DNA from: Macrostomum lignano
Lineage: Eukaryota
Direction of reading: 5' to 3'
DNA length: 64,000 nt
Assembly: GCA_002269645.1 (NCBI GenBank)
Contig: NIVC01001740.1
Coordinates: 124,001-188,000, forward strand
The first letter of the stretch is position 1. Each line of letters starts with the position of its first letter. Positions 1-46,589 of this stretch are shown here, piece after piece. Made by a program: the position numbers and the translations under genes. The notes beneath the pieces are model-generated. The model was not told the origin of the DNA, did no database searches, and saw only the letters and a list, made by a program, of their open reading frames with translations.

Positions 1-35
1 TGTAAATCGACAAACTTTACATTTCTAAAAGAAAA

Positions 36-59
36 ACAGACAGGCAGACACAAAGAGGC

Positions 60-110
<51 letters not shown>

Positions 111-424
111 AAGATAGACAGACAGACACTAAGACAGACAGACACAGAGAGGCAGGCAGACAGACAGACAGACGGACAGACAGACAGACAGACAGACGGA
201 CAGACAGACAGACAGTCAGACAGACAGTCAGACAGACAGACAAGACAGACAGACAGGCAGACAGAAAGACAGACGGACGGACAGACAGACAGACAGTCAG
301 ACAGACAGACAGACAGGCAGACACAGAGAGGCAGACAGACAGGCAGACAGACAAACAGGCAGGCAGGCAGACAGACAGACAGGCAGACAGACAAACAGGC
401 AGGCAGGCAGACAGACAGACAGGC

Positions 425-467
<43 letters not shown>

Positions 468-468
468 A

Positions 469-505
<37 letters not shown>

Positions 506-528
506 GTCAGACAGACAGACAGACAGAA

Positions 529-573
<45 letters not shown>

Positions 574-596
574 GTCAGACAGACAGACAGACAGAA

Positions 597-629
<33 letters not shown>

Positions 630-683
630 CAGAGAGGCAGACAGACAGACAGACAGACAGACACAGAGAGGCAGACAGACAGG

Positions 684-714
<31 letters not shown>

Positions 715-936
715 GCAGACAGACAGGCAGACAGACACTAAGACAGACAGACACAGAGAGGCAGGCAGACAGACAGACAGACGGACAGACAGACAGACAG
801 ACGGACAGACAGACAGACAGTCAGACAGACAGACAGACAGACAGACAGGCAGACACAGAGAGGCAGACAGACAGGCAGACAGACAAACAGGCAGGCAGGC
901 AGACAGACAGACAGGCAGACAGACAAACAGGCAGGC

Positions 937-1016
<80 letters not shown>

Positions 1017-1040
1017 GGACGGACAGACAGACAGACAAAC
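36..1040. repeat. (ACAG)n microsatellite with GCAG/ACGG variants
   Basis: About 1 kb of near-continuous acagacag; explains the SVCL-type ORFs at 17-1085. Confidence 0.97.
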
Positions 1041-1561
1041 ACTGACATTGCTTTTGATGCAGAATGTACTAAAACAGAAAACCAAACAAATTAGTTAGGA
1101 TTTAATAGACGACAATCTGAAGCGCAATCAAGTCATAAATCCTAATAACATAATAGAAAGGAATATATTGTAGTTTAGCAGTCTAACACTCAATCAGCAG
1201 GCGATGGCTTTGACAAAAGAAAAATCTTAGAAGGTACAGTGTATAAAAAGCAAAAATCGGATTAAACAGATTCCAGTCGCAAGGACGGCGCGAGCCGGGG
1301 ACACGGGTGAACTGCTGGTAATTGAACATTAGCTGATTGTTAGCAGGATTAGTCAAAATACCTGTTCAAATTGCACTAAATAGTAAAGCAGGAATTACTG
1401 CAAGAGTAGCGAGTGCACACTGGGTATGTATTGTTTAGGCAAGTTAAATATACTGCTTCAGATAAGTCAGTTAAACTTCCTAAAAGTGCATTACATCTAA
1501 AGCATAAAAACGTGAAATAAATCAGTGGGAGGCGGAGGTTCCAATGGGTGAGCGAGAGGGG

Positions 1562-4245
1562 GTCAAATGGAGTGGCGAGGGGATAGAATGGAGTAGAGAG
1601 GGGATAGAATGGAGTAGAGAGGGGATAGAATGGAGTAGAGAGGGGATAGAATGGAGTAGAGAGGAGATAGATTGGAGTAGAGAGGGGATAGATTGGAGTA
1701 GAGAGGGGATAGAATGGAGTAGAGAGGGGATAGAATGGAGTGGAGAGGGGATAGAATGAAGAGGAGAATGGATAGAATGAAGAGGAGAGGGGACAGAATG
1801 GAGTGGAGAGGGGATAGAATGGAGTGGAGAGGGGATAGAATGGAGTGGAGAGGGGATAGAATGAAGAGGAGAATGGATAGAATGAAGAGGAGAGGGGACA
1901 GAATGGAGTGGAGAGGGGATAGAATGGAGTGGAGAGGGGATAGAATGGAGTGGAGAGGGGATAGAATGGAGTGGAGAGGGGATAGAATGGAGAGGAGAAG
2001 ATATAGAATGGAGAGGAGAAGGGATAGAATGGAGTGGAAGTGGAGAGGGGATAGAATGGAGTGGAGAGGGGATAGAATGGAGTGGAGAGGGGATAGAATG
2101 GAGTGGAGAGGGGATAAATGGAGTGGAGAAGGGATAGAATGGAGTGGAGAGGGGATAGAATGGAGTGGAGAGGTGATAGAATGAAGTGGAGAGGAGGATA
2201 GAATGGAGTGGAGAGGGGATAGAATGGAGAGGAGAGGGGATAGAATGGAGTAGAGAGGGGATAAAATGGAGTGGAGGGGATAGAATGGAGTGGAGAGGGG
2301 ATAGAATGGAGTGGAGAGGGGATAGAATGGAGTGGAGAGGGGATAGAATGGAGTGGAGAGGGGATAGAATGGAGTGGAGAGAGGATAGAATGGAGAGGAG
2401 AGGGGATAGAATGGAGTGGAGAGGGGATAGAATGGAGTGGAGAGAGGATAGAATGGAGAGGAGAGGGGATAGAATGGAGAGGAGAGGGGATAGAATGGAG
2501 TGGAGAGGGGATAGAATGGAGTGGAGAGGGGATAGAATGGAGTGGAGAGGGGATAGAATGGAGTGGAGAGGAGATAGAATGGAGTGGAGAGGGGATAGAA
2601 TGGAGTGGAGAGGAGATAGAATGGAGTGGAGAGGGGATAGAATGGAGTGGAGAGGGGATAGAATGGAGTGGAGAGGGGATAGAATGGAGTGGAGAGGGGA
2701 TAGAATGGAGTAGAGAGGGTATAGAATGGAGTGGAGGGGATAGAATGGAGTGGAGAGGGGATAGAATGGAGTGAAGAGGGGACAGAATGGAGTGGAGAGG
2801 AGGATAGAATGGAGTAGAGAGGGTATAGAATGGAGTAGAGAGGGGATAGAATGGAGTGGAGGGGATAGAATGGAGTGGAGAGGTGATAGAATGAAGTGGA
2901 GAGGGGATAGAATGGAGAGGAGAGGGGATAGAATGGAGTGGAGAGGGGATAGAATGGAGTGGAGAGAGGATAGAATGGAGAGGAGAGGGGATAGAATGGA
3001 GAGGAGAGGGGATAGAATGGAGTGGAGAGGGGATAGAATGGAGTGGAGAGGGGATAGAATGGAGTGGAGAGGGGATAGAATGGAGTGGAGAGGAGATAGA
3101 ATGGAGTGGAGAGGGGATAGAATGGAGTGGAGGGGATAGAATGGAGTGGAGAGGGGATAGAATGGAGTGGAGAGGAGATAGAATGGAGTGGAGAGGGGAT
3201 AGAATGGAGTGGAGAGGGGATAGAATGGAGTGGAGAGGGGATAGAATGGAGTGAAGAGGGGATAGAATGGAGTAGAGAGGGTATAGAATGGAGTGGAGGG
3301 GATAGAATGGAGTGGAGAGGGGATAGAATGGAGTGAAGAGGGGACAGAATGGAGTGGAGAGGAGGATAGAATGGAGTAGAGAGGGTATAGAATGGAGTAG
3401 AGAGGGGATAGAATGGAGTGGAGGGGATAGAATGGAGTGGAGAGGGGATAGAATGGAGTGGAGAGGGATAGAATGGAGGAGAGGGGACAGAATGGAGAGG
3501 AGAAGGGATAGAATGGAGTGGAAGTGGAAAGGGGATAGAATGGAGTGGAGAGGGGATAGAATGGAGTGGAGAGGAGGATAGAATGGAGTGGAGAGGAGGA
3601 TAGAATGGAGTGGAGAGGGGATAGAATGGAGTGGAGAGGGGATAGAATGGAGTGGAGAGGGGATAGAATGGAGTGGAGAGGGGATAGAATGGAGTAGAGA
3701 GGGTATAGAATGGAGTGGAGGGGATAGAATGGAGTGGAGAGGGGATAGAATGGAGTGGAGAGGGTATAGAATGGAGTGGAGAGGAGGATAGAATGGAGTA
3801 GAGAGGGTATAGAATGGAGTAGAGAGGGGATAGAATGGAGTGGAGGGGATAGAATGGAGTGGAGAGGGGATAGAATGGAGTGGAGAGGGGATAGAATGGA
3901 GGAGAGGGGACAGAATGGAGAGGAGAAGGGATAGAATGGAGTGGAAGTGGAGAGGGGATAGAATGGAGAGGAGAAGGGATAGAATGGAGTGGAGAGGGGA
4001 TAGAATGAAGTGGAGAGGGGATAGAACGGAGTGGAAGTGGAGAGGGGATAGAATGGAGTGGAGAGGGGATAGAATGAAGTGGAGAGGGGGTAGAATGGAG
4101 TGGAGAGGGGATAGAATGGAGTGGAGGGGATAGAATGGAGTGGGAGTGGAGAGGGGATAGAATGGAGTGGAGAGGGGATAGAATGGAGTGGAGAGGGGAT
4201 AGAATGAAGAGGAGAGGGGATAGAATGAAGTGGAGAGGGGATAAA
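1562..4245. repeat. 21-bp purine-rich minisatellite (ggggatagaatggagtggaga)n
   Basis: About 2.7 kb tandem array; the 7-aa period (WRGDRME) of the ORFs corresponds to 21 nt; it starts about 80 bp beyond the ITPK1 stop. Confidence 0.96.
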
Positions 4246-4321
4246 TCAGGGAATAAAAAGATTTCCTATTCAAATCGACTCAGTCCGACAGTCCTTCACC
4301 CGACGGGGCCCAATGTCCTGA

Positions 4322-7300: not shown

Positions 7301-8125
7301 TGTGTACGTGCGTGGGCGGGCAGGTGTACCGGTACAAGTGCCTGTGTGTGTCTGTGTACATGTACCTGGGCGGGCAGGTGTACCGGTACAAAGGCCTGGG
7401 TGGGTGTGTGTACATGTGCGTGGGCGGGCAGGTGTACATGTGCGTGGGCAGGTGTGTGTAGATGTTCGTGGGCGGGTATGTGTACATGTGCGTGGGCGGG
7501 TGTGTACATTTGCGCGTACGTATGCTTGGGCGGATATGCGTAAAATGTACATCACATATGCGTGGCAGTTTACTGTTACATTTGCATGGGCAAAGATGTA
7601 CATATGACTGGGAGGATATCCGAATGTACATCTGCTTGGGCGGGAATGCATTTAAGTACGTGGACAGATGTGTATGCATGTGATTTTGCTACTGAACATA
7701 TTCTAACCAAATGCGGATAAATAAATCGAACACAATAGGCAAATTTATTTTGCCCCAGCACACCTGGACATGGCCTGGCACTGGGCAAAGCGGTACAGCA
7801 GCATGGACTCGAGGCCGCGCAGAGGGTCCAACAGAACCAACTCGGAGCCTCTTGCCTCTATCCAAGCTTTAAACCGCCGGACACGATCGATCGATTCGGG
7901 TTTATTCGAGGTCAATTCCGAGTGAATCTTGTGCAGCACAACTCTATAGCGACTGCCCGACTGCAGCAGTTCGTCTAAATCTAGTCGGTGGAATCGAACC
8001 CCAGACGGCGGATTCTGACGGCACCGTTCGAAGAGGCGCAGCTTGCGCTCCTTCTCGTCGGACAGAAGGACGGCCACCTCAATTGGAGGCCGGTCCGCTG
8101 CGGCGGACGAAGCAACTTCGGCAGA
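4322..8125 (-). CDS. ITPK1: Inositol-tetrakisphosphate 1-kinase (ATP-grasp); exons 8125-7764, 7273-7021, 4708-4322
   Basis: Family motifs: [57 protein letters not shown]|[35 protein letters not shown] junctions are phase-compatible (2 and 0); 1002 nt = 334 codons including the stop. No ATG in exon 1 before residue ~90. Confidence 0.93.
4738..6960. repeat. 23-bp minisatellite (gtgaaggggcggattatctggca)n filling ITPK1 intron 2
   Basis: Roughly 95 tandem units with ctggta/ctggca/cggata variants. Confidence 0.96.
7295..7680. repeat. Degenerate gtgtacatgtgcgtgggcggg repeat in ITPK1 intron 1
   Basis: Repeated gtgtacatgtgcgtgggcggg-like units between the donor at 7763 and the acceptor at 7274. Confidence 0.8.
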
Positions 8126-9282
8126 CTGAAAGAGCGAATAAGTGACGTTTTAATTGCATAACCAATCAGTCGCCTATTTTGCTACTTATTCAGAAAGTAG
8201 TAGAGTACGAATAGAGCCACTATTGCTATAAAAAGACTGGTGCTGGAGTAATGCTGAGCTCTGGGCACTAACTATAACTTATACTATAGTACGTGTACCG
8301 TACATGCACGCTATCCTCTCTTCTCCCTTCGCTCTGACTGACCAAGCTTCCATGCACGTAGTTAATTGACATCACGTGACTCTGTTTCGGAATTGAGTCA
8401 TGTCATTATTAAATAGGCTACTTACTTCCCAATTACTCCGCACCCAGCCCAACTCTGCGTTGCGTGGCGCAACTTGTGTCACTGAAAAGTCAAAACTGAG
8501 CTGGAATTTACTGCGCACTCTCAAAGCCAAAGGTGGCGACTTTTTAATGTTGTTGAGTATATATCCTTTTCTAGTAAGAATTAAAATCATAAGAATATAA
8601 CAGACACAGATAATTGGTGAAAGGACAGTTGACCTTTCACCTCAAACTTGCCCCATTTCTATGAATTTCGCGTTTGAAGATGCATTTGCGCTACTCAAAC
8701 ACACGGATGTGGAGACCGAAAAGCAAAAAAATTGAAACCGAAATATAGCATTTCTTTATTCTTTTAACGATCTTTCGGAAACGGACTTCCTCAATTGACT
8801 GTTCAGTTGTGTGGGTAGTAGCTGGATAATTTTAAAAATAAATGCCTTAAAACAGCTCTTTCTCCGTTCTCTGTTAATGTTCGAAGAAACCTTCCAGTTT
8901 CTCAACAGCACTCTTCTGCAAGTGGCATCTCTTTGCTTCATTGTGCTTGAAGCGTTATGCTTGACAAGTTATATGCTTTCTCTGTTTCCCCACGCGTTGA
9001 GATAAAAATTGTCGATGATAGAAGGCAAATGTTGATGGGCTAAAGCTAATGTGTCCAATATCAGTATGGGCCATATACAATGTTCTGATCTGAACGTTGA
9101 TTTTGTACCATAAACGATTATAAACGTGATTTCTCAAAAAGGTCTCAAATGCATGGTGATGGCCTTAGGAGTCTAGGACTAAACTCGTAGTGGGGAACTG
9201 GGAAGCGAAGTTGATTTACAATCACCGAAGCGAACTTAAGTACATAGCTTAGCTTATTAGACAAGCTGAAACAAGACCAGCG

Positions 9283-11993: not shown

Positions 11994-12034
11994 CACTGAC
12001 TAACTAACTAACTGACTAACTAATTAACTAATTG

Positions 12035-12073
<39 letters not shown>

Positions 12074-12125
12074 GACTAACTAACTAACTAACTAACTAAC
12101 TGACTAAGTAAGTAACTAACTAACC

Positions 12126-12161
<36 letters not shown>

Positions 12162-12410
12162 GACTGACTAACTAACTAACTAACTAACTGACTAAGTAAG
12201 TAACTAACTAACCAACTAACTAACTAACTAACTAACTGACTAACTAATTAACTAATTGACTAACTAACTAACTAACTAACTAACTAATTGACTAACTAAC
12301 TAACTGACTAACTAACTGACTAACTAACTAACTGACTAACTAACTAACTAACTGACTAAATAACCAACTAACTGACTGACTTACTAGCTGACTAACTGAC
12401 TAACTAACTG

Positions 12411-12453
<43 letters not shown>

Positions 12454-12674
12454 CACTGACTAACTAACTAACTGACTAACTAACTAATTGACTAACTAAC
12501 TAACTAACTAACTAACTGACTGACTAAGTAAGTAACTAACTGACTAACTAACTGACTAAATAACTAACTGACTGACTAAGTAAGTAACTAACTAACCAAC
12601 TAACTAACTAACTAACTAATTGACTAACTAACTAACTGACTAACTAACTAACTCACTGACTAACTAACTAACTG

Positions 12675-12731
<57 letters not shown>

Positions 12732-14060
12732 TTGACTAACTAACTAACTGACTAACTAAATAACTGACTAAGTAAGTAAATAACTAACTAACTGAATAAA
12801 TAACTAACTAATTAACTATCCATCTAATTAACGAACTAATTACTGATTAATTAACTACGAGCGTAACTATCTATCTAAGTACCTACTAAGTGATTTAACT
12901 AACTAACGAACTAACTAACCTAATTTGGGCTGTACAGTTACATCCAATGGTCAGATCACGTGACCCGAGCCCCTATCTTGGCTGGCACAGCCCACCTGAA
13001 AGCGGCCCCGAGCCCAGAAGTAAGCGGCCGGCAGGAGGAAGGCAGCTCCGATCGCCCGACCCCAGGTTCTGTGCAGAAACTCCAGCCAGAAGATGGCTTT
13101 GAAATCGTTCAGCGACATGCTGCCTCGCTCGCGCACGATGTACTCGTACTCCGGGTAGGCCTGGTAGCGCTGGAACTCCCGCTCCCAGTCTGACTGAGTC
13201 ACTGGCGGCAGCTCCTGGATTCCATTGATTATGGATTGGACGCGTGAGAGAGAATATGAGCATGATAAGATTAGAGCCAATAGTAATGATGACTTTTGAG
13301 CTAAAGATGAGATTGGACACACTGTGAGATTAGAAACGCGTTGAATTTGAGGACAAAAGGGACAATTAGCGACAACGATGAGTTTTAGAGCTAAGGGTAA
13401 GATTAGAGTCAGAGTGAGGTAAGAGAAAGGTTAGATTAGATTATTGTTGAGATTAGACTAGGGGTGGGGGAGATAAACCAGAGTGAGATTCAAGTCAGTG
13501 TGAAACTAAAGCTGGGTTAAGATTAGAGTAAATGTGAGATTCGAGTCTAGATTGAGACTAGATTCATGTAAGATAAAGTCATGGTGAGACAACAGTAAGG
13601 ATGAGATAAGCCTGGGTGAGATTAGAGTCTGGGTGAGATCAGAGACTGAGTGAGATTAGAGACACACACAGAAACCCTTAAACACCTTAAACAGCGACCA
13701 GTTGGTCATGCTCAGGCCGGACCTCGTGAGCCGGGTCAGGCCGCCCAGCACAACGGCTCCAGCGGTCATCCCGGCGCAGGTGGCCAGCCAGATGCCGACG
13801 GCGCGTCTCTGGCCAGCGGTGAGATGCGCCACCATCGGGTGCCAGACCGGTGAAGCCGACGGAGGCGCCGACGAGTGGCACCGGCGGATGGCGTTGCCGC
13901 CTAGCGGAGATCGACTCTGATTACGCAATCGATTGCGCAACAGCGAGCCAAACTGGGATTGGCGAGCGTTGGCGGCCAGCAGGCTGCCGGAGTTCAACGA
14001 GCAGCAGCGAACCGTGCTCAGCCCGAGATGGGCCGGCGCTGACAGGTGGCGAATGGCGAA
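10658..14060 (-). CDS. COX15: Heme A synthase COX15; exons 14060-13686, 13214-12996, 11377-10658
   Basis: Motifs [92 protein letters not shown]. All junctions are phase 0 GT-AG; 1314 nt = 438 codons including the stop. Confidence 0.96.
11521..12920. repeat. (CTAA)n microsatellite with CTGA variants in COX15 intron 2
   Basis: About 1.4 kb of taactaac. Confidence 0.96.
13330..13660. repeat. Degenerate gagattagagt repeat in COX15 intron 1
   Basis: Recurrent gattagagt/gtgagatt units; highly diverged. Confidence 0.6.
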
Positions 14061-14171
14061 CTGAGTTGAGGAGAGGGTTAATAAATACAGGCTGTGAAAA
14101 TTAGCGTTCCGTTCCGAACTGGAGGGCACAATTACGATCCCTAAGGTTGAAGAATTTCTCGCCTTAAGTTC

Positions 14172-15240
14172 TTGGGATTCTGATCCCTAAATTCCTGGGA
14201 TTCTGATCCCTAAACAGATGGGATTCTGATCTTTAAACAGTTGGGATTCTGATCCCTAAATTCCTAGGATACAGATCCCTAAATTCCTGGGATTCTGATC
14301 CCTAAATTCCTGGGATTCTGATCCCTAAATTCCTGGGATTCTGATCCTTAAACAGATGGGATTCTGATCCTTAAACAGTTGGGATTCTGATCCCTAAATT
14401 CCTAGGATACAGATCCCTAAATTCCTGGGATTCTGATCCCTAAATTCCTGGGATTCTGATCCTTAAACAGATGGGATTCTGATCCTTAAACAGTTGGGAT
14501 TCTGATCCCTAAATTCCTAGGATACAGATCCCTACATTGCTGGGATTCTGATCCCTAAATTCCTGGGATTCTGATCCCTAAATTCCTGGGATTCTGATCC
14601 TTAAACAGATGGGATTCTGATCCTTAAACAGTTGGGATTCTGATCCCTAAATTCCTAGGATACAGATCCCTAAATTCCTGGGATTCTGATCCCTAAATTC
14701 CTGGGATTCTGATCCCTAAATTCCTGGGATTCTGATCCTTAAACAGATGGGATTCTGATCCTTAAACAGTTGGGATTCTGATCCCTAAATTCCTAGGATA
14801 CAGATCCCTACATTGCTGTGATTCTGATCCCTAAATTCTTGGAATTCTGATCCTTAAATTTCTGGGTTTCTGATCCCTAAATTGCTGGGATTCTGATCCC
14901 TAAATTGCTGGGATTCTGATCCCTACATTGCTGTGATTCTGATCCCTACATTGCTGTGATTCTGATCCCTACATTGCTGTGATTCTGATCCCTAAATTGC
15001 TGGGATTCTGATCCCTAAATTGCTGGGATTCTGATCCCTACATTGCTGTGATTCTGATCCCTACATTGCTGGGATTCTGATCCCTACATTGCTGTGATTC
15101 TGATCCCTAAATTGCTGGGATTCTATCCCTACATTGCTGGGATTCTGATCCCTAAATTGCTGGGATTCTATCCCTACATTGCTGTGATTCTGATCCCTAC
15201 ATTGCTGGGATTCTGTTCCCTAAATAGTTGGGATTCTTGG
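14172..15240. repeat. 23-bp minisatellite (gggattctgatccctaaattcct)n with higher-order structure, immediately upstream of COX15
   Basis: Variant unit taggatacag recurs at 14265, 14403, 14518, 14656 and 14794 (spacings 138, 115, 138, 138 = 6, 5, 6, 6 units of 23). Confidence 0.95.
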
Positions 15241-15779
15241 AATTCCAGCAATCTTGTTTGAGAATTATAAACTATGGATGGAGTTAACACGTGTATTGAC
15301 TCAAATTTAAGTTAATTTCAAAGACATTTAAGCTTCGAGTTTAAAAGGAACTCAGCACCAATGGTTACAGAAATGCCTACTTGAAACTCATAGTTGTTGG
15401 GCCCAGTAAGTTGCAGCTAAATATAAACGAATAAAGTAATTTTTTTAAACGAACTAAAGTTTTAACACTGAAAACGTTCAATGGTTAAAAATTGTAAGCT
15501 TAGTCACAGCCGAAACTTATTGATTTCTGTATACTTGAAAATTTATGAAAAATGGAATGCGCAGAAGTTGGACCGGTGCAAACTTTTTTGTGTCGTGACT
15601 GAAGTCAGCGCCAGGCTAATAAATGTGTAAAGCAATAATGTTATTGTTTTATGTTAGTATTGAAAATGTCAAAGCAAGTCTGAAAGATTCAATATGTGTA
15701 TTTCATGCATAAATCGTCGATTTTATCAAATCTCCCATTAACGGCGGGATTGGATTTAGGCGAATGTGCTTTAGACCCA

Positions 15780-16245
15780 GGATTGGATAGTGAATGTACT
15801 TTGGGGCAGGGAGGGTTAGATTTTGAATGTACTTTAGGCAGGGGAGGATTGGATAGTGAATGTACTTTAGGGCAGGGGAGGATTGGATAGTGAATGTACT
15901 TTAGGCAGGGGAGGATTGGATAGTGAATGTACTTTGGGGCAGGGGAGGATTGGATAGTGAATGTACTTTAGGGCAGGGGAGGATTGGATAGTGAATGTAC
16001 TTTAGGGCAGGGGAGGATTGGATAGTGAATGTACTTTGGGGCAGGGGAGGATTGGATAGTGAATGTACTTTGGGGCAGGGGAGGATTGGATAGTGAATGT
16101 ACTTTGGGGCAGGGGAGGATTGGATAGTGAATGTACTTTAGGGCAGGGGGATTGGATATTGAATGTACTTTAGGGCAGGGGAGGATTGGATAGAATGTAC
16201 TTTAGGGCAGGGGAGGATTGGATAGTGAATGTACTTTAGGGCAGG
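15780..16245. repeat. 33-34-bp minisatellite (tagtgaatgtactttagggcaggggaggattgga)n
   Basis: About 13 tandem units. Confidence 0.93.
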
Positions 16246-17144
16246 TATAAAATAATGGTAAATGTACTTTAGAGAATCTTAGGATTATATATTAAATTAC
16301 ATAGTACAAAGAAAGTAGGGCGCATTGTATTAGCGAACCAAAAAAGCCAGGATCAAAGGCAGCTGCAGTTCCAGCAAGCAGACAGAGACTTTTTCACTTA
16401 TCCGCGAATGCAATAAAATGATTTTTGTTAACAAGTAATAAAAATTAACATAATTATGTAAAATAATTTTTGTTAAAAATAAAATCGATAATTAAAGACT
16501 ACACTAAAAGTGGGCAACTCTAGAGATCATAAAAACATACCAGGTATAATGTTTGTCCAGCAATATTAATTATAACAAATTTATTGATAAATAAAAATTA
16601 TTGAGGTATAATAGTGGAATTTCAGAGGGTATTTTTTGCACTTTAAAATTATAAAAAAGCAAATAAGGAGATATGAAAAATAAGAATGAATGGGATTAAA
16701 GAGGGAACCATTAAACCCGGAATTTTTGCATTACGACAATTTTTGCGCGAATTAAAATTTTTAATAAAAGTAATATGCACAAGAGAATGACTTATTAAGA
16801 AGCACAGAGCACCTAATAATTTTTATTGATTGTTAAGAACCACAATACACAAATAAGACAATTTTTATATATTCATAAACAGCAAAGAGATCGACTTAGC
16901 CAAAATGGAACTGTTTTTTGAACTTTAAAATAAGAACATCATGTACTTTTTTATGCTTCACTTAATATATCTATGGTTAAGAAAGTGTTAGCAAATATCA
17001 ATAACATTATTGTAAACCTTAATTCAACTCCAGTTCCAGTCTATTCATGGGGCAATTCATGGGGTTTTGGTCATAGACAATTCGCAATTTGCAGCAACTA
17101 AGATATGTTGTGCGCTTTCTCAAATCTACGTTCCATATTTTTCT

Positions 17145-17842
17145 CAAGGACGACTTAAGTAGAAGGACGGGAAACCTCGTTTCTTAGAAAAGTTTTGAAG
17201 GCACTTTTTCCCGAAAAAATACACTACGGAGATAGGAAGTTTTCATTTTTTCAGCACAAAAATTGTTATTGCGTTTGATAGGAGGCAGATCCAGTGTTCA
17301 TCTTTTGATATGTTGTGCCTTTTTTATTGCTCTATCGATATTTATAAAGCTTTTCGTTCAGAAAATTAGGATTCTATGTTAATTTTTTATTCTACGTATA
17401 TTTCCTGGATCTAAAAATCACAAAAATGCATGACACAGCTCCAATATTTGGTTTTATGAACCTATTTTATCATCTCTGTTACAAATATTTGCTACACAGT
17501 CGGGTAAGAATGATAAAAAAGACTCATGAAGCTAAAGAGCCGAGCCGTGGCATTCTAATGTATTTCAAGCACAAGACACGCGAAAATATACGTAGAATAA
17601 AAAATTAACATAGAATCCTAATTTTCTGAACGAAAAGCTTTATAAATATCGATAGAGCAATAAAAAAGGCACAACATATCAAAAGATGAACACTGGATCT
17701 GCCTCCTATCAAACGCAATAACAATTTTTGTGCTGAAAAAATGAAAACTTCCTATCTCCGTAGTGTATTTTTTCGGGAAAAAGTGCCTTCAAAACTTTTC
17801 TAAGAAACGAGGTTTCCCGTCCTTCTACTTAAGTCGTCCTTG
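17145..17842. mobile_element. 698-bp non-autonomous DNA transposon (foldback/MITE) with 259-bp TIRs and an 8-bp TSD
   Basis: 17145-17403 is the reverse complement of 17584-17842; termini CAAGG...CCTTG; ATTTTTCT is duplicated at 17137-17144 and 17843-17850. Confidence 0.92.
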
Positions 17843-18265
17843 ATTTTTCTGTTATTAGTATAATAGAGATTCCTGGGATTTCAAGACTGTGTCAATCAAT
17901 TACCCGATGAAAACGGTGCATAGGCCAAGGTGCCTACCAGAGTCGTAGCGCAGATAACACAGGTAAAAATAGGAAAAAAGTGAACCTAGACGACTCTAAA
18001 AGGACGAGATGTCACGGCCCAAAAGTCGCCAAAAAGTTATCAAAGAGTCAATTCTCAAGACTCAACGAGTCAAGAGTCAATACTCAACGTGACGCCCTTT
18101 TGAGTCGCCTCCAGAGTCGCTAGAGTCACTAGTGAGTTCTTTGCAATGACTGTTTGCGACTCTTGTCAAGGTAACGTGGAAAGGCCCAGGGCAGAGAGAT
18201 GTTGGCTTCCCGATTTCCAATCTGACATCCTGGATGTTGAGCCAGGATGCCAGGTGGTACGAGAA

Positions 18266-21200
18266 TTAACTAGCCGCAGATTCGGCAACACCGAATACTA
18301 CGTAGCGAATTAGCGTCCTTGGCAACGGCAATCGGCGAGCCCTAGCAACCAGCGGATCTCCGCAAGCCAGACGCAGCCTCAGTGCGGAGGCCGCCTTCAA
18401 GCTCAGCGGGCCGGAGAGGTCGTCGCGCAGGCGCAGGAAAAACCGGCCCAAACGCGGCTCGCTGGCGGCCAGCTGGTGGCCGGCCAGGTAAGCCGCCGCC
18501 GAGGCCAGCCGGCGCCGCCGGGTGCTCAACCGGGACAGGGTGAGCAGCAGCCTGGCCAAAGCCAAGAACTCCTGCGAGCTGGCGCTGCACTCCATCAGGG
18601 CAAGCAGCTTTCTCACTAGGCGGTCCAGGGCGGTCTCTCTGTGATTGAATGTCACCTTGTTGGACAGGTCGGCTCCGTACACAAGCAGTAGGCGGACCAC
18701 TTCGCACCACGCTGTTACCGCTTGAGCCTGTGTTGGGGGCGAATAGAAAACAGAAATTAGGGCTGGTTGCTATGCGGTTGTCAAGCTACTAGATTAACCA
18801 CGGAGTTTAGATTAACAACAGCCAGTTGCTATGCAGTTGCAATCTACTACGCTCGTAGATTAACTTGGAGTTCCGATAGCCCGTTGCTATGCAGTTGTCA
18901 AGCTGGGGTGCTTTCACAAGGTCGAAATTTCACAACGTCGAAAAGTAAATTATTTCACAAGGTCGAAACTTCACAACATCGAAAACTTTAGCAAGAGACT
19001 TCATAAGGTCGAAATTTCATAAGGTCGAAATTTCACAACATCGAAAACTCAAATAGCAGCCACTTTCACAAGGTCGAAACTTCACAAGGTCGAAATTTCA
19101 CAACATCGAAAAATCTACGACGTTGATGCTTTCGACGTTGTGAAATTTCGAGTTTGTGAAACCCCCCGTCAAGCTACTAGATTAACCCCGGAGTTTAGGT
19201 TAACAATTAGCCATCAAACCGTTGCTATGCAGTTGTCAAGCTACTAGATTAACCCCGGAGCTTAGGTTAACAATTAGCCATCAAACCGTTGCTATTCAGT
19301 TGTCAAGCTACTAGATTAACCCCGGAGCTTAGGTTAACAATTAGCCATCAAACCGTTGCTATGCAGTTGTCAAGCTACTAGATTAACCCCAGAGCTTAGG
19401 TTAACAATTAGCCATCAAACCGTTGCTATGCAGTTGTCAAGCTACTAGATTAACCCCAGAGCTTAGGTTAACAATTAGCCATCAAACCGTTGCTATGCAG
19501 TTGTCAAGCTACTAGATTAACCCCAGAGCTTAGGTTAACAATTAGCCATCAAACCGTTGCTATGCAGTTGTCAAGCTACTAGATTAACCCCAGAGCTTAG
19601 GTTAACAATTAGCCATCAAACCGTTGCTATGCAGTTGTCAAGCTACTAGATTAACCCCAGAGCTTAGGTTAACAATTAGCCATCAAACCGTTGCTATGAA
19701 GTTGTCAAGCTACTAGATTAACCCCAGAGCTTAGGTTAACAATTAGCCATCAAACCGTTGCTATGCAGTTGTCAAGCTACTAGATTAACCCCAGAGCTTA
19801 GGTTAACAATTAGCCATCAAACCGTTGCTATGCAGTTGTCAAGCTACTAGATTAACCCCGGAGCTTAGGTTAACAATTAGCCATCAAACCGTTGCTATGC
19901 AGTTGTCAAGCTACTAGATTAACCCCAGAGCTTAGGTTAACAATTAGCTATCAAACCGTTGCTATGAAGTTGTCAAGCTACTAGATTAACCCCAGAGCTT
20001 AGGTTAACAATTAGCCATCAAACCGTTGCTATGCAGTTGTCAAGCTACTAGATTAACCCCGGAGCTTAGGTTAACAATTAGCCATCAAACCGTTGCTATG
20101 CAGTTGTCAAGCTACTAGATTAACCCCGGAGCTTAGGTTAACAATTAGCCATCAAACCGTTGCTATGCAGTTGTCCAGCTCACTTTGAACGGCGCTAACT
20201 CCAGCGTGGCGGGAGCGCAGGCGACCAGCCGATCTAGCGGAGTCTCTCCGCAACGATTCCTGGGATTCACCCGGCAAGCCCGGCTAAGCAGAAGTCGTCC
20301 TGTGGCGGCCCAGTGCAGCGGCGGATGATGCACCAGGTGAGACACGGGCGCGGCGGGTAGCCGACAGGTGAGGGCCAAAGAGTGGAGCGCCGTGTTGCCC
20401 CGGCTGTTGGCGAGGTCCACGCTGGCTCCGCCGGACTCCAGCAGCAGGCGGGCGACGTCAACTCGAAGGGCGTGGGTGGCGCGCATCAGGGCGCTGAGGC
20501 CGCCGCAGTCGGGCGCAAAACTCGAACCGTCTGATTGCTCTGGGAGGCAGGGTGTGGGATGGTGATTATCGGTATATGTCGGTATGGGAAGAGATTATTG
20601 AGTAGGATAATGACTATCAATGATTATATGAATAATCATTTATCATCGTAATGGGATGATGGTTACGAGTATCAGGTGAGATTATGATTATTAAGTAGGA
20701 TAATGATTATTAAGTAAGATGATGATTATTGAGTAGGATGATGATTTTCAGGTGAAATGATGATTTTTGAGTAGGATGATGATTATCAGGGGAGATGATT
20801 ATTGAGTAGGATAATAGTTATCAGGAAAGATGATTTTTATTGAGTAGGATGATGATTATCAGATGAGATGATGATTTTCATATGAGATGATGATTATTAA
20901 GTAGAACGATAATTTTCAAGTAGGATGATAATTTCTGAGTAGGATAATGATTATCAGGTGAGATGATGATTATTGAGTAAGATGATGATTATCAGATGAG
21001 ATGATAATTATCAGATGAGATGATAATTATCAGATGAGATGATAATTATCAGATGAGATGATAATTATCAGGTGAGATGATGATTATTGAGTAGGATGTT
21101 GATTATCAGGTGAGATGATGATTATTGAGTAAGATGATGATTATTAGGCGGAATGATTATTGAATGGAGTGATGAATTATGGGGTGGGCTGAAATGCTTA

Positions 21201-24089
21201 GTTGACTTTGGCGATGCATTTCATTTACTTTTCAATTCTACACATAAAATCCAACGTTAGGCTGGCATCCTCACCTTCCAGACAGCTGAAGCAGGGCTCA
21301 GTGCTAACCGCGTCTACAGAGGCACCGGCCGACTCCGCAGCCGTATCCAATAGCAACCGGACAACCTCCAGATGTCCCTGACTGACCGCTTTAATTAGAG
21401 GCGTCGAGCCGCGAGCGTCTTGACAAGCGGGCGAGGCGCCAGAGGCCAGCAGGAGCCGGACAGTGTCCAGATGGCCGCGCTCGCAGGCGTGGATCAGTGG
21501 CACCTCGTAGCCGAGGCCGTCCACCGCCGCGCCGAGCGCCAGGAGCTCCTCGGCCAGGCGGCTGTTGCCGTTGGCTGCAGCGTAGCACAGAGCGGTGCGC
21601 CTGCTGCCGCCCTGCAGTTCGACAGACGGGACCGAAGTCACGTGACCCAAGTGCAAAAGTACAAGCGCTTAATTCAAAAGAGAATTAGCATGAACCCGGT
21701 AAAAAAATAACACCTGATAAAAAGCAGATAGAAACAAAGGGAATGAGACAGACACATAAACAGGCGGACAAACAGGAAGGCAGAGACACTAGACAGAAAA
21801 AACAGACACTTGACAGGGGATGACAGGCAGACAATACGGACACATTTAGACACTACAGAGAATTGACAGACACTGCAGACAATTGACGGACAGACACTTG
21901 ACAGAAACTACAGACAATTGACAGAGATACTATAGACACTTGACAGAAACTACAGACAATTGACAGAGATACTATAGACACTTGACAGACACTACAGACA
22001 CTTGACAGAAACTACAGACACTTGACAGAAACTACAGACACTTGACATAGATACTACAGACACTTGACAGAAACTACAGACACTTGACAGAAACTACAGA
22101 CAATTAACAGACACTACAGACACTTGACAGATACTACAGACACTTGACAGATACTACAGACACTACAGACACTTGACAGACACTACAGACACTTGACAGA
22201 AACTACAGACACTTGACAGATACTACAGACAATTGACAGATACTAACAGACACTTGACAGATACTAACAGACACTTGACAGATACTAACAGACACTTGAC
22301 AGATACTACAGACACTTGAGAGACACTACAGACAATTAACAGACACTACAGACACTTGACAGATACTACAGACACTTGACAGATACTACAGACACTACAG
22401 ACACTTGACAGACACTACAGACACTTGACAGACACTACAGACACTTGACAGACACTACAGACACTTGACAGATACTACAGACACTTGACAGATACTAACA
22501 GACACTTGACAGATACTAACAGACACTTGACAGATACTACAGACACTTGACAGATACTAACAGACACTTGACAGATACTAACAGACACTTGACAGATACT
22601 ACAGACACTTGACAGATACTAACAGACACTTGACAGATACTACAGACACTTGAGAGACACTACAGACAATTAACAGACACTACAGACACTTGACAGATAC
22701 TACAGACACTTGACAGATACTACAGACACTTGACAGACACTACAGACACTACAGACACTTGACAGATACTACAGACACTTGACAGATACTAACAGACACT
22801 TGACAGATACTAACAGACACTTGACAGATACTAACAGACACTTGACAGATACTACAGACACTTGACAGATACTACAGACACTTGACAGACACTACAGACA
22901 CTACAGACACTTGACAGATACTACAGACACTTGACAGATACTAACAGACACTTGACAGATACTAACAGACACTTGACAGATACTACAGACACTTGACAGA
23001 TACTACAGACAATTGACAGATACTAACAGACACTTGACAGATACTAACAGACACTTGACAGATACTACAGACACTTGACAGATACTACAGACACTTGACA
23101 GATACTACAGACACTTGACAGACACTACAGACACTACAGACACTTGACAGATACTACAGACACTTGACAGATACTAACAGACACTTGACAGATACTAACA
23201 GACACTTGACAGATACTACAGACACTTGACAGATACTACAGACACTTGACAGACACTACAGACACTACAGACACTTGACAGATACTACAGACACTTGACA
23301 GATACTAACAGACACTTGACAGATACTAACAGACACTTGACAGATACTACAGACACTTGACAGATACTACAGACAATTGACAGATACTAACAGACACTTG
23401 ACAGATACTAACAGACACTTGACAGATACTACAGACACTTGACAGATACTACAGACAATTGACAGATACTAACAGACACTTGACAGATACTAACAGACAC
23501 TTGACAGATACTACAGACACTTGACAGATACTAACAGACACTTGACAGATACTACAGACACTTGACAGATACTACAGACACTTGACAGATACTACAGACA
23601 CTTGACAGATACTAACAGACAATTGACAGATACTAACAGACACTTGACAGAGAACCTACAAACAAGTCACAGACACGTCAGAAACTTGACAGACACTACA
23701 GACACTACACAGAGCGAAACTATTGCCCTGCCTACCTGCACCAGATCCACGGGCCCGCCGCCTCTGGACAGAAACCGCAGCACAGCCTGGGCATCGTCGC
23801 ACCTGGCCCGATAGAGAAACTCCACCCGCCTGGACGAGCCCAGAGAGGCGGGGGCAGCGGACAAATTGGCGGCAGCCTGGCACGGCGAGCCGCACGAAGT
23901 GTTGCCGCCGGCTAGCGAGGCGGGCAGCAGGAGGCTGCACAGCAGGCCGCAGTCGCCAGTGGCCGCGTCCATCGGTGGCTGCTGCTGATCAGGCTGAAGT
24001 CCGCCGCCACCGTCATTGAATAACTGCTGGCGATGCCGATGGTCCAGACTGGGCGCGCTCAGGCTGCGATGGCCAAGACTGCGGGACAT
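18266..24089 (-). CDS. Ankyrin repeat and SOCS box protein (ASB-like); exons 24089-23736, 21611-21275, 20539-20184, 18727-18266
   Basis: Ankyrin repeats (RTALCYAAANGNSRLAEELLALGA, PLIHACERGHLDTVRLLLASGA, STPLIKAVSQGHLEVVRLLL, GNTALH) and a C-terminal SOCS box (PLSLKAASALRLRL...LPLPRTLIRYV). Splice phases 0/1/0 are consistent; 1509 nt = 503 codons. Confidence 0.9.
18770..20175. repeat. 67-bp minisatellite filling ASB intron 3
   Basis: Unit gttgctatgcagttgtcaagctactagattaaccccggagcttaggttaacaattagccatcaaacc (starts at 19221, 19288, ...); about 15 near-identical copies plus diverged copies on the left. Confidence 0.95.
18905..19167. mobile_element. 263-bp MITE nested in the 67-bp array, with an 8-bp TSD
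   Basis: GTCAAGCT is duplicated at 18897-18904 and 19168-19175; imperfect TIRs ggggtgctttcacaaggtcgaaatttcacaacgtcgaaa / ggggggtttcacaaactcgaaatttcacaacgtcgaaa; internal ttcacaaggtcgaaa repeats. Confidence 0.85.
20590..21170. repeat. Degenerate gatgatgattatcaggtga repeat in ASB intron 2
   Basis: Low-complexity gatgatt/gagtaggat units. Confidence 0.8.
21855..23712. repeat. 20-21-bp minisatellite (acagacacttgacagatact[a])n in ASB intron 1
   Basis: About 1.85 kb tandem array built from two 10-11-bp half units. Confidence 0.95.
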
Positions 24090-24139
24090 TGGAGTGCGGG
24101 GATGGCTGTGTTAAATATGATGAAAAGAAATTATTAAAC

Positions 24140-24283
24140 ATAAACATAGACACATAGACACATAGACAGATAGACAGACTGACAGTCAGACAGAAATACA
24201 GACAGACAGACAGACAGACAGACAGACCCGCAGACAGACAGACAGACAGACAGACAGATAGACAGACAGACACTAAGACAGGC

Positions 24284-24315
<32 letters not shown>

Positions 24316-24328
24316 CCGCAGACAGACT

Positions 24329-24359
<31 letters not shown>

Positions 24360-24363
24360 TCGC

Positions 24364-24395
<32 letters not shown>

Positions 24396-24630
24396 TGACA
24401 GACAGACCCGCAGACAGACAGACAGACAGACCCATAGACAGACAGACACACAGACAGACCCGCAGACAGACAGACACACACTCACACAGACAGACAGACG
24501 ACAGACAGACAGATCCGCAGAAAGACAGACAGACACACAGACAGACAGATCCGCGGACAGACAGACAGACACACAGACAGACCCGCAGACAGACAGACAG
24601 ACATACATACAGACAGACACTAAGACACAG
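24140..24630. repeat. (ACAG)n microsatellite upstream of the ASB start
   Basis: Direct reading. Confidence 0.93.
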
Positions 24631-27600
24631 AAACATTACAGCCACAAGGTCTAAGACACAACGAGAAATACAGAAAAGCAAGGCAAAGCCAGAAATGAAG
24701 GACAAGCAGACAACACTAAACACCTAAACACTAAGGCAGACAGTGACAGAGTCAAGACAGAAACAAAGAGGGAGACAGAGATTGATAGTCAGACAAGCTA
24801 CCAAAAAAACAACACATAACTAGTTGGATGCATAGCTAGCAAAAGCAACTTACCTTCGCACTTGGCCAATAAATTCATTACTATCGCCAGCTACTGGTTG
24901 ATTTGAATCCTGACGAAACAGCTGGCGAAACAGTTTGCGTAGAGGCATGAGCCAGCTAGCATGAGAACAATTGCAATGGTAGCATTACTAATTAGACTTA
25001 AGTTTTGTCTTAAGTTTTTAAACAGATCTGATTACTACATGTTTAACATCAATAGATAATTTGGAAAGTTTTAGTATAGGTTAGTTCATCTCTTAAGGCA
25101 TATCTAGATTTTGTTATAATTTAGGATATTTTAAGGCATATCTAGATTTTGTTATAATTTAGGATATTATTAAGGCATATCTAGATTTTGTTATAATTTA
25201 GGATATTATTAAGGCATATCTAGATTTTGTTATAATTTAGGATATTATTGTAGTGCCAAAAAGCACAATTCTTATTTTTTAATCGAAATCTTCAGACAGT
25301 TAAAGAACCATGGTACAATTCCTTTGACAATACAAAATGCATTAACCTAAAACCTTAATGATGCATACAGTCATAGACCACAAAGTCAAAGATAATACAT
25401 AGATGGCTAACACTTCTTGATTAAAGTTAGGAAGGTGGCAAAGGATGCATTGGAATAAATTGATAAGGTAGAATCTATGTGCTAGGGGGCCTATCTATGT
25501 AATATATATATGCTATTTCTAATAGTAAATCAATATAAAAATGTTTAATTTAACATTTGAAAATGGAAGTTAGATTAACAAATAACAATTTGTTTTTCAC
25601 AACAAGATTAATACCAAGTCTTAGAATTCATGCTGATTTATGCTAGAAAATCTGGTTTCCATGTACACTAGGGACTTTACAAAGCATATGGATATAGATA
25701 TGGTTATAAAAACATATATTTCCAATACTTTGTTCTAATATTACAGTATTACCAAGACTTAAAAAACCATTTGAGCTGTTGATTTAATAGGGATAAGGGT
25801 AAATAAATTTTGCTAGTTTCAAAGTGAGGGGAACTCATAAGTCCCTAGAATTTAGGACTTAAATAATAGCAATTTTTGTTATACTTAGGTGGTTAAGGTT
25901 AAATATAAGATGAATAGGGGCCTACTTCACTTTTAAAAGGAAGCTCTAAGTCCCTAGCATCTGGGACTAGTATGGGGTTGGGATGATATTGATAAGGGGC
26001 TAATTCTCAAATGCTTTGAGATTGCAATCAAGCAAATTACAGGATTCTTGCTGTCTGGGGGATACTTGCTATCTAGTTCTAGGGTTGCTTACTATTAGGA
26101 TATCTAGGGCTGTGTGCTATAGGGAGATGCTTGCTATAGGCCTAGGGGTTTCTAATTCATTTGTCTACCAACAATTTGTCTGCTAAGTAGATAAAATGCC
26201 CTTTCCTTCTTAAAACTGTTCATCTACTAGGAAATGGGATATGGATAAAGAGTAAAGTAGGGACTAGTAGGGAGCTGCCTAACAACCTCTCTGTCCATTA
26301 ACATTGATATACTTATAATGTTATAAAGCGCTGCATTTATAGGGGTCTTTGATTATCATTTTAACAAACTATTTCACAATACACACCTAAAATAAGAAAG
26401 CTTAACTAAAAATAATGGAATGGAAACTGTTAAAAATTTGATGAAGATAAAAATATTGGCAAATAATTATTCTCATTAAAAAAATTATTAGATGCAAGAC
26501 ATCTGTGCCATTTGTAGAAAGTGTGTGAGCACTCGACAACAAGCTTTGCAATGTGATGATTGCAGTCAATGGCAGCACCAAATATGTGGTTCAGGCATAA
26601 GCCAAAAGGAGTAGGCCAATGAAGAGGTTAATGAAGAGGTTGTGGCCCTTGTGGGTTGGGCAGCTCCCCACCCCCATTTCCCGGCAGATGAACAGTTTTT
26701 GAAAGAGAAAACTTTTTGTCTGCTTAGCAGACGAACTGTCAGCAGACGAAACGACTGGTATCCGCTAGGTTTATAGGCCCTAAATTGAATGCTTGCTTGC
26801 TGTCTGGGGGATGCTTGCTATCTAGGGGATGATTGCTATCTGGCGAGATGCTTGACATCTGGGGAATGCTTTCGACTTAGGGGAATGCCTATTATCTTTG
26901 TGAAGGCTTTATTTTGTGGTGTTTTTTTGTTTATTTTAGAAAAAAGAGATTCATAGCAAACATCTTTGTCCATGACAAATTTACTCAAATAAGGTGAATC
27001 TATAAAACAGAAGAAATCTTTTCTTAAGAAAATGTGCTTTTTTCAATGGAATTCCATGAAAACTTTTGCTCCTTGCTTATTGGGCGCTCCGAAAGGGGGC
27101 ACTAGATTGCTAGTCTATATTATAACTAAACCTAAAAAGTTAATTTCCAAACTAAACTGTCAATAATCGTTCGAAGAAATCTATATTTTAACCACGTGGG
27201 AAGCAAGGAAATGCTTTGAAATCTAGCCGTATCAATGAATAAAAGCAAAGGCAGCCAAAACTTATTAATTTAAAAACATAAGTAGCGCAGCTGGTTAAGT
27301 TGTTTTTTGGCTAGTAAATTTTGTTTAAAAACAGTACTTCTTATAAAACAAAATTCAATTCAATTCAAGGTCTGTTTCTTGATTTTTTCTATTTAATTGC
27401 CATTAAGTTGTATAGACGTTAAAAGCAAGGACCACTAGAAGAAGAAGGGGCCTTTTCATATTGCTTGTTCTGGTTCCAGAACCAGAACCAATTTGTGAAG
27501 TATAACTTTTTGTCTCCATAACTAGAGGGAGATACGTGCTATAAAGTTTCTATTATTGTATGAAAAACGCCAAGAAGAAAGTGAAAAATTGTGCTAAGTG

Positions 27601-38500: not shown

Positions 38501-38891
38501 GGCTGATAAAAGTGGCCGATCATTTGCTATTGGAGATTGCGCTTCGATAGTTGACGGTCCGCTGCCGTGCACGGCTCAGGTGGCTGAGAGGCAGGGGCGC
38601 TACCTGGCTAATCGGCTCAATCAGGATCGAACTGGGCCTCTGTCAGAATCTAGCAGCGGCGCTCAACTCCAAGATGAACCGTTTCGTTTTGCTGGCCGCG
38701 GCATGCTGGCTTATATTGGCGAGTTTAAAGCTCTGACTGACACGCCCGGCGTGAAACTGCACGGATTCACATCTTGGCTGCTGTGGCGGTCGGCCTATCT
38801 GACTAGGCTGGGCAGCTGGCGGCTCCGGCTGCAGGTGCCCGTGGACTGGACTAAAGCGCTGCTCTTTGGCAGGGACACCTCCATGTTCTAG
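35520..38891 (+). CDS. Type II (alternative, rotenone-insensitive) NADH:ubiquinone oxidoreductase NDH-2, Ndi1/NDA-like; exons 35520-36020, 37114-37472, 38369-38891
   Basis: First Rossmann motif LVILGTGWGS, SPRNHFLFTPLL, GTLEFRSIIEP, YDRLIIGVGA, FLK|EVSDA, second Rossmann motif IVGGGPTGVEF, VWSTG, AIGD, AQVAERQG, GMLAYIG, LLWRSAYL. Phases 0 and 2 are compatible; 1383 nt = 460 aa; Arg/Ser/Leu-rich presequence. Confidence 0.95.
36195..37040. repeat. 34-bp minisatellite (gatgtccggtagtccctagtttgggattcttaaa)n in NDH-2 intron 1
   Basis: About 24 tandem units. Confidence 0.95.
37504..37870. repeat. 31-bp minisatellite (aaaagtcacgtgaccattcgtcttagatcat)n in NDH-2 intron 2
   Basis: About 12 units, most carrying the palindrome GTCACGTGAC. 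Confidence 0.92.
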
Positions 38892-40703: not shown

Positions 40704-41144
40704 ATGGTGAGCCGTCTGCGCGACCTGGACATCTACGGCAACGAACTGGCCGACCGCGCCTACGTCCTTGAGCCGGCGCCGGCCTCGCCGCTGGAGCCGC
40801 TGGTGTCGCCGGCCAGGCAGGCTGTGGAATCAGCCGTGGACACGACCGCCATCTCGGCCGCTTGGCAGCGGGGCCAGGCGGTTGCCGCCACCGGCTCCGC
40901 GCACAGCTGGGAGACCTGGGAGCGAGTCCGGGCGGATCCCGGCCTGGTTGCCAGGGCCGCTCTGGTCGGTCTGTGCGGCCTCGGCGGCGTCGTGGCCGGC
41001 TATCGAGGCGGCGGCCTGCGGCGACTCGCCTACGGAGCGCTGGGCCTGACGGCCGGGGCCGGGCTGTGCTACCCCGCCGAGCTGGCCGACGCCTCTGTCC
41101 GAGGGTTCGATTTTGTTCGCGAGAGAAGCACCGGCGGGAAATAA
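40704..41144 (+). CDS. MICOS complex subunit MIC26/MIC27 (apolipoprotein O family), single exon
   Basis: ATG in aaaatcATGG context; 146 aa; N-terminal LDIY; two hydrophobic helices linked by a basic loop (AALVGLCGLGGVVAGYRGGGLRRLAYGALGLTAGAGLCYP), matching the APOO/APOOL G-x-x-K-K...x-CYP pattern. Confidence 0.8.
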   Translation: MVSRLRDLDIYGNELADRAYVLEPAPASPLEPLVSPARQAVESAVDTTAISAAWQRGQAVAATGSAHSWETWERVRADPGLVARAALVGLCGLGGVVAGYRGGGLRRLAYGALGLTAGAGLCYPAELADASVRGFDFVRERSTGGK

Positions 41145-46215: not shown

Positions 46216-46589
46216 AAACTAGATCCAAACAAACCAGCAAATGCTACAATGATTTCAACCATTACTAAACTTACTTTTCAACCGGTGTTCTGTGGAATCT
46301 CCGTGGCAAAAGCTGCGGTTTCCTTCAAAGTAGACGCTGATTTATATTCTGCAACAGCGGAAGCCCTCCAAAAAGCCTCTGACCGCTTTTTGCTACTGCG
46401 CCTGCGCTGTTTCGACTGCTGAAAACTCGTTTCAAGCGTGTAGTGATTCGCTCATTAGTGACGCCGCCAACTTCTTCTCCATCTCCAGTCAGTGTCGAAC
46501 ATAAAGGTGAAAAAATCTCCATGCCAGCTTCAATAAATGTTCTGGTGCAGTCTGACACTTTCAGATGAAGCCTTAAGGTCTTAGCATGG

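Follow-up and report, generated by a model that had tools for sequence, protein, structure and literature searches.

A probable leader-donated start codon at the COX15 locus of Macrostomum lignano

In flatworms, the AUG of the spliced leader (SL) reportedly can act as the initiator of translation, as described by Cheng, Cohen, Ndegwa and Davis in 2006 (J Biol Chem 281:733). Passages of later papers that cite Cheng et al. 2006 treat the 3′-terminal AUG of the leader as an established source of the initiator Met in this group (PMC9851317, PMC12582326, PMC5832876, PMC7653826). In Echinococcus granulosus, 143 of the 187 clusters bearing the leader need the leader ATG to be full-length, and the examples in which this ATG is in frame include a subunit of NADH-ubiquinone oxidoreductase and COX6B, the usage being conserved between orthologues (PMC3510090). 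Here we analyzed the 5′ end of the COX15 gene in a window of 64,000 nucleotides (nts) of Macrostomum lignano, a free-living flatworm (assembly GCA_002269645.1, contig NIVC01001740.1, positions 124,001 to 188,000 of the forward strand; all positions below are counted from the first nucleotide of this window). Our results suggest, with a probability of about 0.8, that this gene has no genomic start codon and that its Met is donated by a spliced leader joined at position 14060.

M. lignano possesses a single 35-nt leader, CGGTCTCTTACTGCGAAGACTCAATTTATTGCATG, whose 3′ end, ...TTATTGCATG, is ATG (PMC8629364). The leader is common to M. lignano, M. cliftonense and M. hystrix, and its final ATG has been described as a translation start codon (PMC10468722). 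An initial annotation of this DNA, which had raised the idea of a donated Met for COX15, presupposed that the leader ends in AUG and that this AUG is able to initiate translation in flatworms. The former is true of M. lignano itself (PMC8629364, PMC10468722), and the latter is established according to the citing papers mentioned above, in addition to the Echinococcus data (PMC3510090). Approximately 30-39% of M. lignano genes are trans-spliced, with conserved genes enriched among them (PMC8629364; PMC5730564), and from these published fractions we estimated that a conserved gene like COX15 has a prior of about 45% for trans-splicing. The SL RNA gene was absent from the 64-kb window, since neither an Rfam scan nor a search for the 35-nt leader allowing up to 3 mismatches gave a match; the Rfam scan revealed no other known RNA either.

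COX15 resembles the leader-AUG mRNAs of Schistosoma and Echinococcus in that the leader of the species ends in AUG, the acceptor stands in front of an AUG-less open reading frame (ORF) and in frame with it, and the conserved N-terminus is recovered only via the leader AUG. It differs from them in coming from a free-living macrostomid and in being predicted from the genomic sequence alone. A second group to be compared is the slORFs collected with slORFfinder (PMC9851317), in which, as in COX15, the ORF is present only on the trans-spliced mRNA and is missed or truncated by annotation of the genome alone. Whereas near-cognate NUG starts predominate among the slORFs of nematodes, Oikopleura and trypanosomes, which frequently are alternative ORFs, the frame considered here is the main conserved ORF and would start at a canonical AUG. 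In the isoleucyl-tRNA synthetase gene of Trypanosoma brucei (PMC3273800), whose dual targeting by alternative trans-splicing is the true precedent for control of mitochondrial targeting, the position of the leader decides whether the presequence is included, which is also the case in the model proposed for COX15; the trypanosome gene, however, has two alternative acceptors, two isoforms and genomic AUGs, whereas M. lignano COX15 has one evident acceptor and would depend on the leader AUG. The phytochelatin synthase of Schistosoma mansoni was considered as a precedent for leader-dependent targeting and was rejected, as its isoforms are produced by cis alternative splicing and its authors found no trans-splicing.

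COX15 was not found reported as a leader-AUG case in the literature, and the term COX15 was absent from the supplementary files of PMC5173321, PMC5730564 and PMC10468722. Because initiation at the leader AUG is established in flatworms, and for mitochondrial proteins as well, the mechanism considered here is of an already known kind, and COX15 would be a new case of it in a free-living macrostomid, not a new mechanism. The known leader-AUG genes would thereby be extended to an early-branching free-living flatworm and to an essential enzyme of respiratory-chain assembly, and no new question is opened.

The 5′ edge of the COX15 coding sequence

The gene consists of three exons on the minus strand (Table 1), and its 437 genomic codons give a model of 438 amino acids when one Met is added. 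Residues 91-426 of this model match the Pfam family COX15-CtaA (PF02628) with E = 1.2e-94, the identity to animal COX15 is 47-52%, and H174, H248, H349 and H415 are invariant in an alignment of 14 sequences. Judging from this match and alignment, the gene is the nuclear COX15 (heme A synthase) of M. lignano. The full-length domain and the conserved histidines are shared with the COX15/CtaA family and the mature enzyme appears ordinary, whereas the supply of the start codon alone would set this gene apart from its counterparts in most organisms. A CTAA microsatellite of approximately 230 copies is located at 12000-12919, inside intron 2.

Inspection of the minus strand at the beginning of exon 1 gave the text ...ctgtatttattaaccctctcctcaactcAG/TTC GCC ATT CGC CAC CTG TCA, in which the slash marks the end of the acceptor and the triplets are in phase 0. 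The acceptor is CAG, and the pyrimidine fraction of its tract, 0.76, was by far the best among the 10 AGs that lie from the upstream stop to codon 30; two of these 10, that at 14061 included, are in frame. When G+C content was determined in bins of 30 nts, it was 0.40-0.50 upstream and 0.70 from 14060 on, and the step lies exactly at the AG. No genomic ATG was found in the COX15 frame between the TAG that closes it upstream and Met76, which is the first in-frame ATG of the exon. Taking together this frame back to TAG and the enumeration of upstream exons described below, no credible genomic AUG that would give the full conserved N-terminus of COX15 was found. When the leader ATG was placed in front of TTC GCC ATT..., 126 codons were free of stops through exon 1 and into the COX15 frame. 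The initial annotation had described an AG at 14062-14061 followed in phase 0 by the same seven codons, a first in-frame ATG (WHPM) about 75 codons later, an N-terminus rich in Arg, Ser and Leu and free of acidic residues, and a minisatellite of about 1 kb upstream, and all of these descriptions agree with the present data (Table 1).

The 75 codons that precede Met76 were examined for coding signals, using a codon-usage model for which 1348 confident codons from the window served as the training set. The log-odds score was +3.5 bits in frame 0 versus -36.5 and -20.6 bits in the other two frames, and none of 3000 shuffles attained the frame-0 score. In addition, the G+C content at third codon positions (GC3) was 0.76, which is like that of the remaining exons. 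The lack of stop codons is a weak signal when taken alone, as the frame was open in 23% of the shuffles in such G+C-rich DNA, and the lack of both Asp and Glu was seen in 5.8% of them. These results indicate that the stretch is coding, and in frame 0 only. The codon usage and GC3 of the stretch, the step in G+C content and the pyrimidine tract are stronger signals than the open frame, and the coding sequence of COX15 thus reaches, or nearly reaches, the acceptor with no ATG behind it.

The amino acid composition of the 75-codon extension (9 Arg, 13 Ser, 10 Leu and 9 Ala; no Asp, Glu or Lys) is basic, and the first acidic residue of the COX15 model appears only after the first 91 residues. Absence of acidic residues is typical of mitochondrial presequences. 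All of the animal COX15 proteins in the alignment have N-terminal extensions of comparable order ahead of the conserved VGxWL motif. A protein beginning at Met76 would have approximately 13-15 residues ahead of the COX15-CtaA domain, which is less than in the bacterial CtaA of the alignment. The search for processing sites in the extension gave simple R-2/R-3 patterns only. The N-terminal ~90 residues form an extension that is basic and lacks acidic residues, presumably a mitochondrial presequence together with a matrix-side segment; the figures for composition and amphipathicity are compatible with a presequence and are not decisive.

From these observations we infer the following course of expression. 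The primary transcript of COX15 would be trans-spliced at the CAG acceptor to the 35-nt leader ending with ...UUGCAUG. Joining at 14060 would give ...UUGCAUG UUC GCC AUU..., where the leader part ends with ...AATTTATTGCATG and the AUG is in phase 0. With this AUG as the initiator, the product would be MFAIRHLS..., a COX15 protein of 438 amino acids, and the extension of ~90 residues, placed ahead of the first transmembrane helix in the COX15-CtaA domain, would serve as the import signal.

The initial annotation had gone further and claimed that SL trans-splicing both completes this ORF and controls the mitochondrial targeting of its product. The first half of this claim is favored by the phase of the acceptor, the coding nature of the extension, the lack of an upstream exon with ATG and the Met-less public gene models described below. 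The second half is not supported, because there is one evident acceptor and no alternative or regulated use of it was seen. Should the model hold, trans-splicing would be no more than a requirement for a full-length COX15 mRNA that can be translated.

Arguments against a donated Met and other explanations

Several points weigh against a Met donated by the leader. The acceptor sequence, ACTCAG, has just CAG in common with the published SL-acceptor motif of M. lignano, [T/C]TNCAG. This discrepancy is softened because the full motif is carried by 9551 of 21754 (44%) real trans-splice acceptors of this species (PMC8629364). The amphipathicity of the N-terminus was modest, with a maximum hydrophobic moment (μH) of 0.41 according to a crude measure. 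No read, expressed sequence tag or transcript with the leader at 14060 was retrieved by looking up exact sequences, by searching with words or by scanning for the junction, and neither the leader-COX15 junction nor the exon start had a match in two metagenome scans. Similarly, the spliced COX15 protein, with or without the added Met or starting from later Mets, had no exact match in the protein collection. The sequence by itself is also compatible with an unusual 5′ exon spliced in cis from a non-consensus donor. As to the sensitivity of the protein word searches, those with exons 1-2 or with the 91-residue N-terminus missed entries of M. lignano that do exist, the index being incomplete for this species.

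An ordinary cis-spliced 5′ exon is the explanation that competes best with leader donation, though we consider it unlikely. It supposes that COX15 has its own promoter and ATG upstream of the minisatellite and that this exon is spliced in phase 0 to 14060 with no participation of the leader. The COX15 acceptor is of a normal cis type, acceptors for cis- and trans-splicing are indistinguishable by sequence (PMC12582326), and more than half of the M. lignano genes are not trans-spliced (PMC8629364; PMC5730564), all of which suit such an exon. We enumerated the possible exons on the minus strand of 18265-14061, requiring an ATG, an open frame and a phase-0 donor. With the donor consensus of M. 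lignano, GT[G/A]AG (PMC8629364), no ATG exon was found in this interval, compared with 1.1 expected. When the donor was relaxed to GT[AG], six candidates appeared, but this number is below chance (21 ± 5 expected), and the candidates were short (6-14 codons) with a G+C content of 26-50%. Moreover, the whole 4.2-kb interval that separates the COX15 acceptor from the stop of the ankyrin-repeat gene upstream is AT-rich and largely repetitive, carrying the 23-bp and 34-bp arrays and the 260-nt inverted repeat, and two independent public models found no such exon. An upstream cis exon with its own ATG had been named in the initial annotation as a finding that would contradict a leader-donated Met, and no credible one is present in 18265-14061.

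These two public models are informative on the gene's 5′ end. Among database entries, exon 3 has its best relative in the UniRef entry A0A1I8I827 (P0079), "Cytochrome c oxidase assembly protein COX15" of M. lignano. When this protein was compared with the window using tblastn, the identity was 100% in exon 1 (13982-13686), 97% in exon 2 and 81% in exon 3, the last value being low only because the entry is frameshifted there, and the flatworm origin assumed in the initial annotation is thereby borne out. The entry is 5′-partial and begins with LLAANARQ, without Met. An exhaustive search of representative sequences with the 91-residue N-terminus gave one real match, A0A1I8JR71 (P0198), an M. lignano entry whose annotation is that of an ankyrin-repeat protein. 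This model is chimeric and passes from ...LPLPRTLIHYV to FAIRHLSAP..., leaving the ankyrin exon at 18299 with GTATTC as donor, so that the implied intron is 18298-14061; it enters COX15 exactly at 14060 and contains frameshifts and retained intron sequence throughout. No record was found for the contigs encoding these two entries. Both public annotations take the extension as coding and neither found a start codon of COX15, and we attribute the Met-less models to the lack of a start codon, because a gene finder behaves in this manner when the gene has none. The value of the present case lies foremost in annotation: gene finders that use the genome only cannot start a leader-AUG gene, and what they left for COX15 is a fragment and a chimera. 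Recognition of leader-AUG ORFs would mend the N-termini, and the predictions of subcellular targeting, of many flatworm genes.

It is much less probable that the 75 codons are untranslated and that synthesis starts at Met76 or at a near-cognate codon, with a presequence-free COX15 imported via internal signals. Met76 is located ~15 residues ahead of the Pfam domain, an arrangement like that of bacterial CtaA, and the proportion of open shuffles given above shows that 75 open codons are not unusual in such G+C-rich DNA. Nevertheless, the frame-specific codon usage and GC3 mark the stretch as coding, a run of 91 residues without an acidic one is typical of presequences, and long N-terminal extensions are present in all the aligned animal homologues. 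In addition, if the leader is spliced at this site, scanning ribosomes would reach the in-frame leader AUG before Met76.

A real ankyrin-COX15 fusion, made from a read-through transcript spliced in cis from 18298 to 14060, is hardly credible, since, although A0A1I8JR71 joins the two parts in frame and both genes share a strand at a distance of 4.2 kb, its donor GTATTC is far from the consensus GT[G/A]AG, the model is full of frameshifts and retained intron sequence, the presequence-like region would become internal while the upstream gene would lose its last 8 codons, and such fusions are what gene finders typically build for genes lacking their own ATG.

We also considered whether COX15 is the downstream cistron of an operon with the ankyrin gene that is resolved by the SL. 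In the published criterion, the repeat-adjusted gap to the upstream gene on the same strand is less than ~1 kb (PMC8629364). The distance from the stop at 18266 to the acceptor at 14061 is 4.2 kb, and subtraction of the repeats (1065 + 467 + ~700 nts) leaves ~2 kb, and hence this candidate was rejected by the 1-kb limit. Further repeats in the interval possibly escaped recognition, and the two genes may be co-transcribed.

The ITPK1-like neighbor and other features of the window

The features of the window are summarized in Table 1.

Table 1. Positions of COX15 elements and of other features in the 64-kb window
Feature	Position	Strand	Remarks
COX15 3′ splice acceptor, proposed SL trans-splice site	14061..14085	minus	Pyrimidine-rich tract tttattaaccctctcctcaactcAG, AG 14062-14061
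COX15 ATG-free codons (FAIRHLSAP...SPVWHP)	13836..14060	minus	75 codons; N-terminal extension, presumed presequence region
COX15 first genomic in-frame ATG (WHPM)	13835-13833	minus	Met76 of the exon
In-frame TAG closing the COX15 frame upstream	14189-14187	minus	42 codons to 14060, no ATG
COX15 exon 1	14060-13686	minus	125 codons; ends AAG/gt
COX15 exon 2	13214-12996	minus	73 codons; acceptor atccag/GAG, donor CAG/gtgggc
COX15 exon 3	11377-10661, TGA 10660-10658	minus	239 codons and stop; acceptor ccacctcag/CCC
23-bp minisatellite	14173-15237		46 copies; upstream of COX15 acceptor, presumed outron or intergenic
34-bp tandem array	15779-16245		Upstream of COX15
Perfect 260-nt inverted repeat	17144-17403 / 17584-17843		180-nt spacer; foldback or miniature inverted-repeat transposable element (MITE)-like; intergenic, upstream of COX15
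Last exon of upstream ankyrin-repeat gene	18266..18700	minus	SOCS-box-like LPLP motif, stop 18268-18266
ITPK1-like first coding exon	7764..8127, gene to about 4325	minus	Next gene downstream of COX15
NDH2 (type II NADH dehydrogenase) gene	35520-38891	plus	Pyr_redox_2 and NDH2 C-terminal domain
ApoO/MIC26-like ORF	40705-41141	plus	Weak Pfam match, below gathering score
F5/8 type C-like galactose-binding exon	53607-54152, 61997-62398		Two near-identical copies, ~8.4 kb apart
Very long tandem-repeat arrays	17-4273, 24013-24723, 46573-50949, 58463-60331		Spurious ORFs up to 1458 codons
Retroelement pol fragment	62553-63853		Reverse transcriptase domain; right end of window

A similar arrangement was observed in the ITPK1-like gene. 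Its last exon matches Pfam Ins134_P3_kin, and its first coding exon aligns to residues 12-105 of human ITPK1. The acceptor ctctTTCAG (AG 8127-8126) is a perfect [T/C]TNCAG and is followed by the exon in phase 0, and G+C content rises from 0.33 to 0.67 across it. In this frame, TAA is located 8 codons upstream of the first codon of the exon, and the first in-frame ATG is codon 108. Addition of the leader AUG would give MSAEVASS..., exceeding the human protein by approximately six residues. There is also an in-phase candidate cis exon at 8590-8426, running from an ATG to GTAAGT (donor 8425); this exon is AT-rich, and the 55 residues that it would contribute are unconserved. Judging from its acceptor and frame, the ITPK1-like gene is likely a second ORF that relies on the leader AUG, although the case is less clean than that of COX15.

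This arrangement is seen in two of approximately six genes of the window that have a recognisable 5′ end. It could be speculated that loss of the start codon is common in conserved genes of M. lignano, with trans-splicing becoming obligatory for them, and that for mitochondrial proteins the efficiency or choice of the site would act as a switch on the import-competent output, but this generalization is rather doubtful.

Three other genes have an ATG of their own. NDH2 has it at 35520, with a basic N-terminus MLASLLLLPLSRRCC...; among animals, NADH dehydrogenases of this alternative type are uncommon. The ATG of the ApoO-like ORF, at 40705, coincides with an apparent rise of G+C content, as judged by eye, and is only a few bases past a possible acceptor, ctgtag. 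The ankyrin gene has its ATG at 24089, and a possible acceptor (aacacag/CC; 24089-24110, minus strand) is located 19 nts ahead of it. A leader AUG joined at this acceptor would not share the frame of the main ORF, and a short upstream ORF would result.

Repeats are very abundant in the window, in line with reports on the M. lignano genome. The two F5/8 type C-like copies carry antisense ORFs that are one residue apart, and the pair looks like a recent local duplication.

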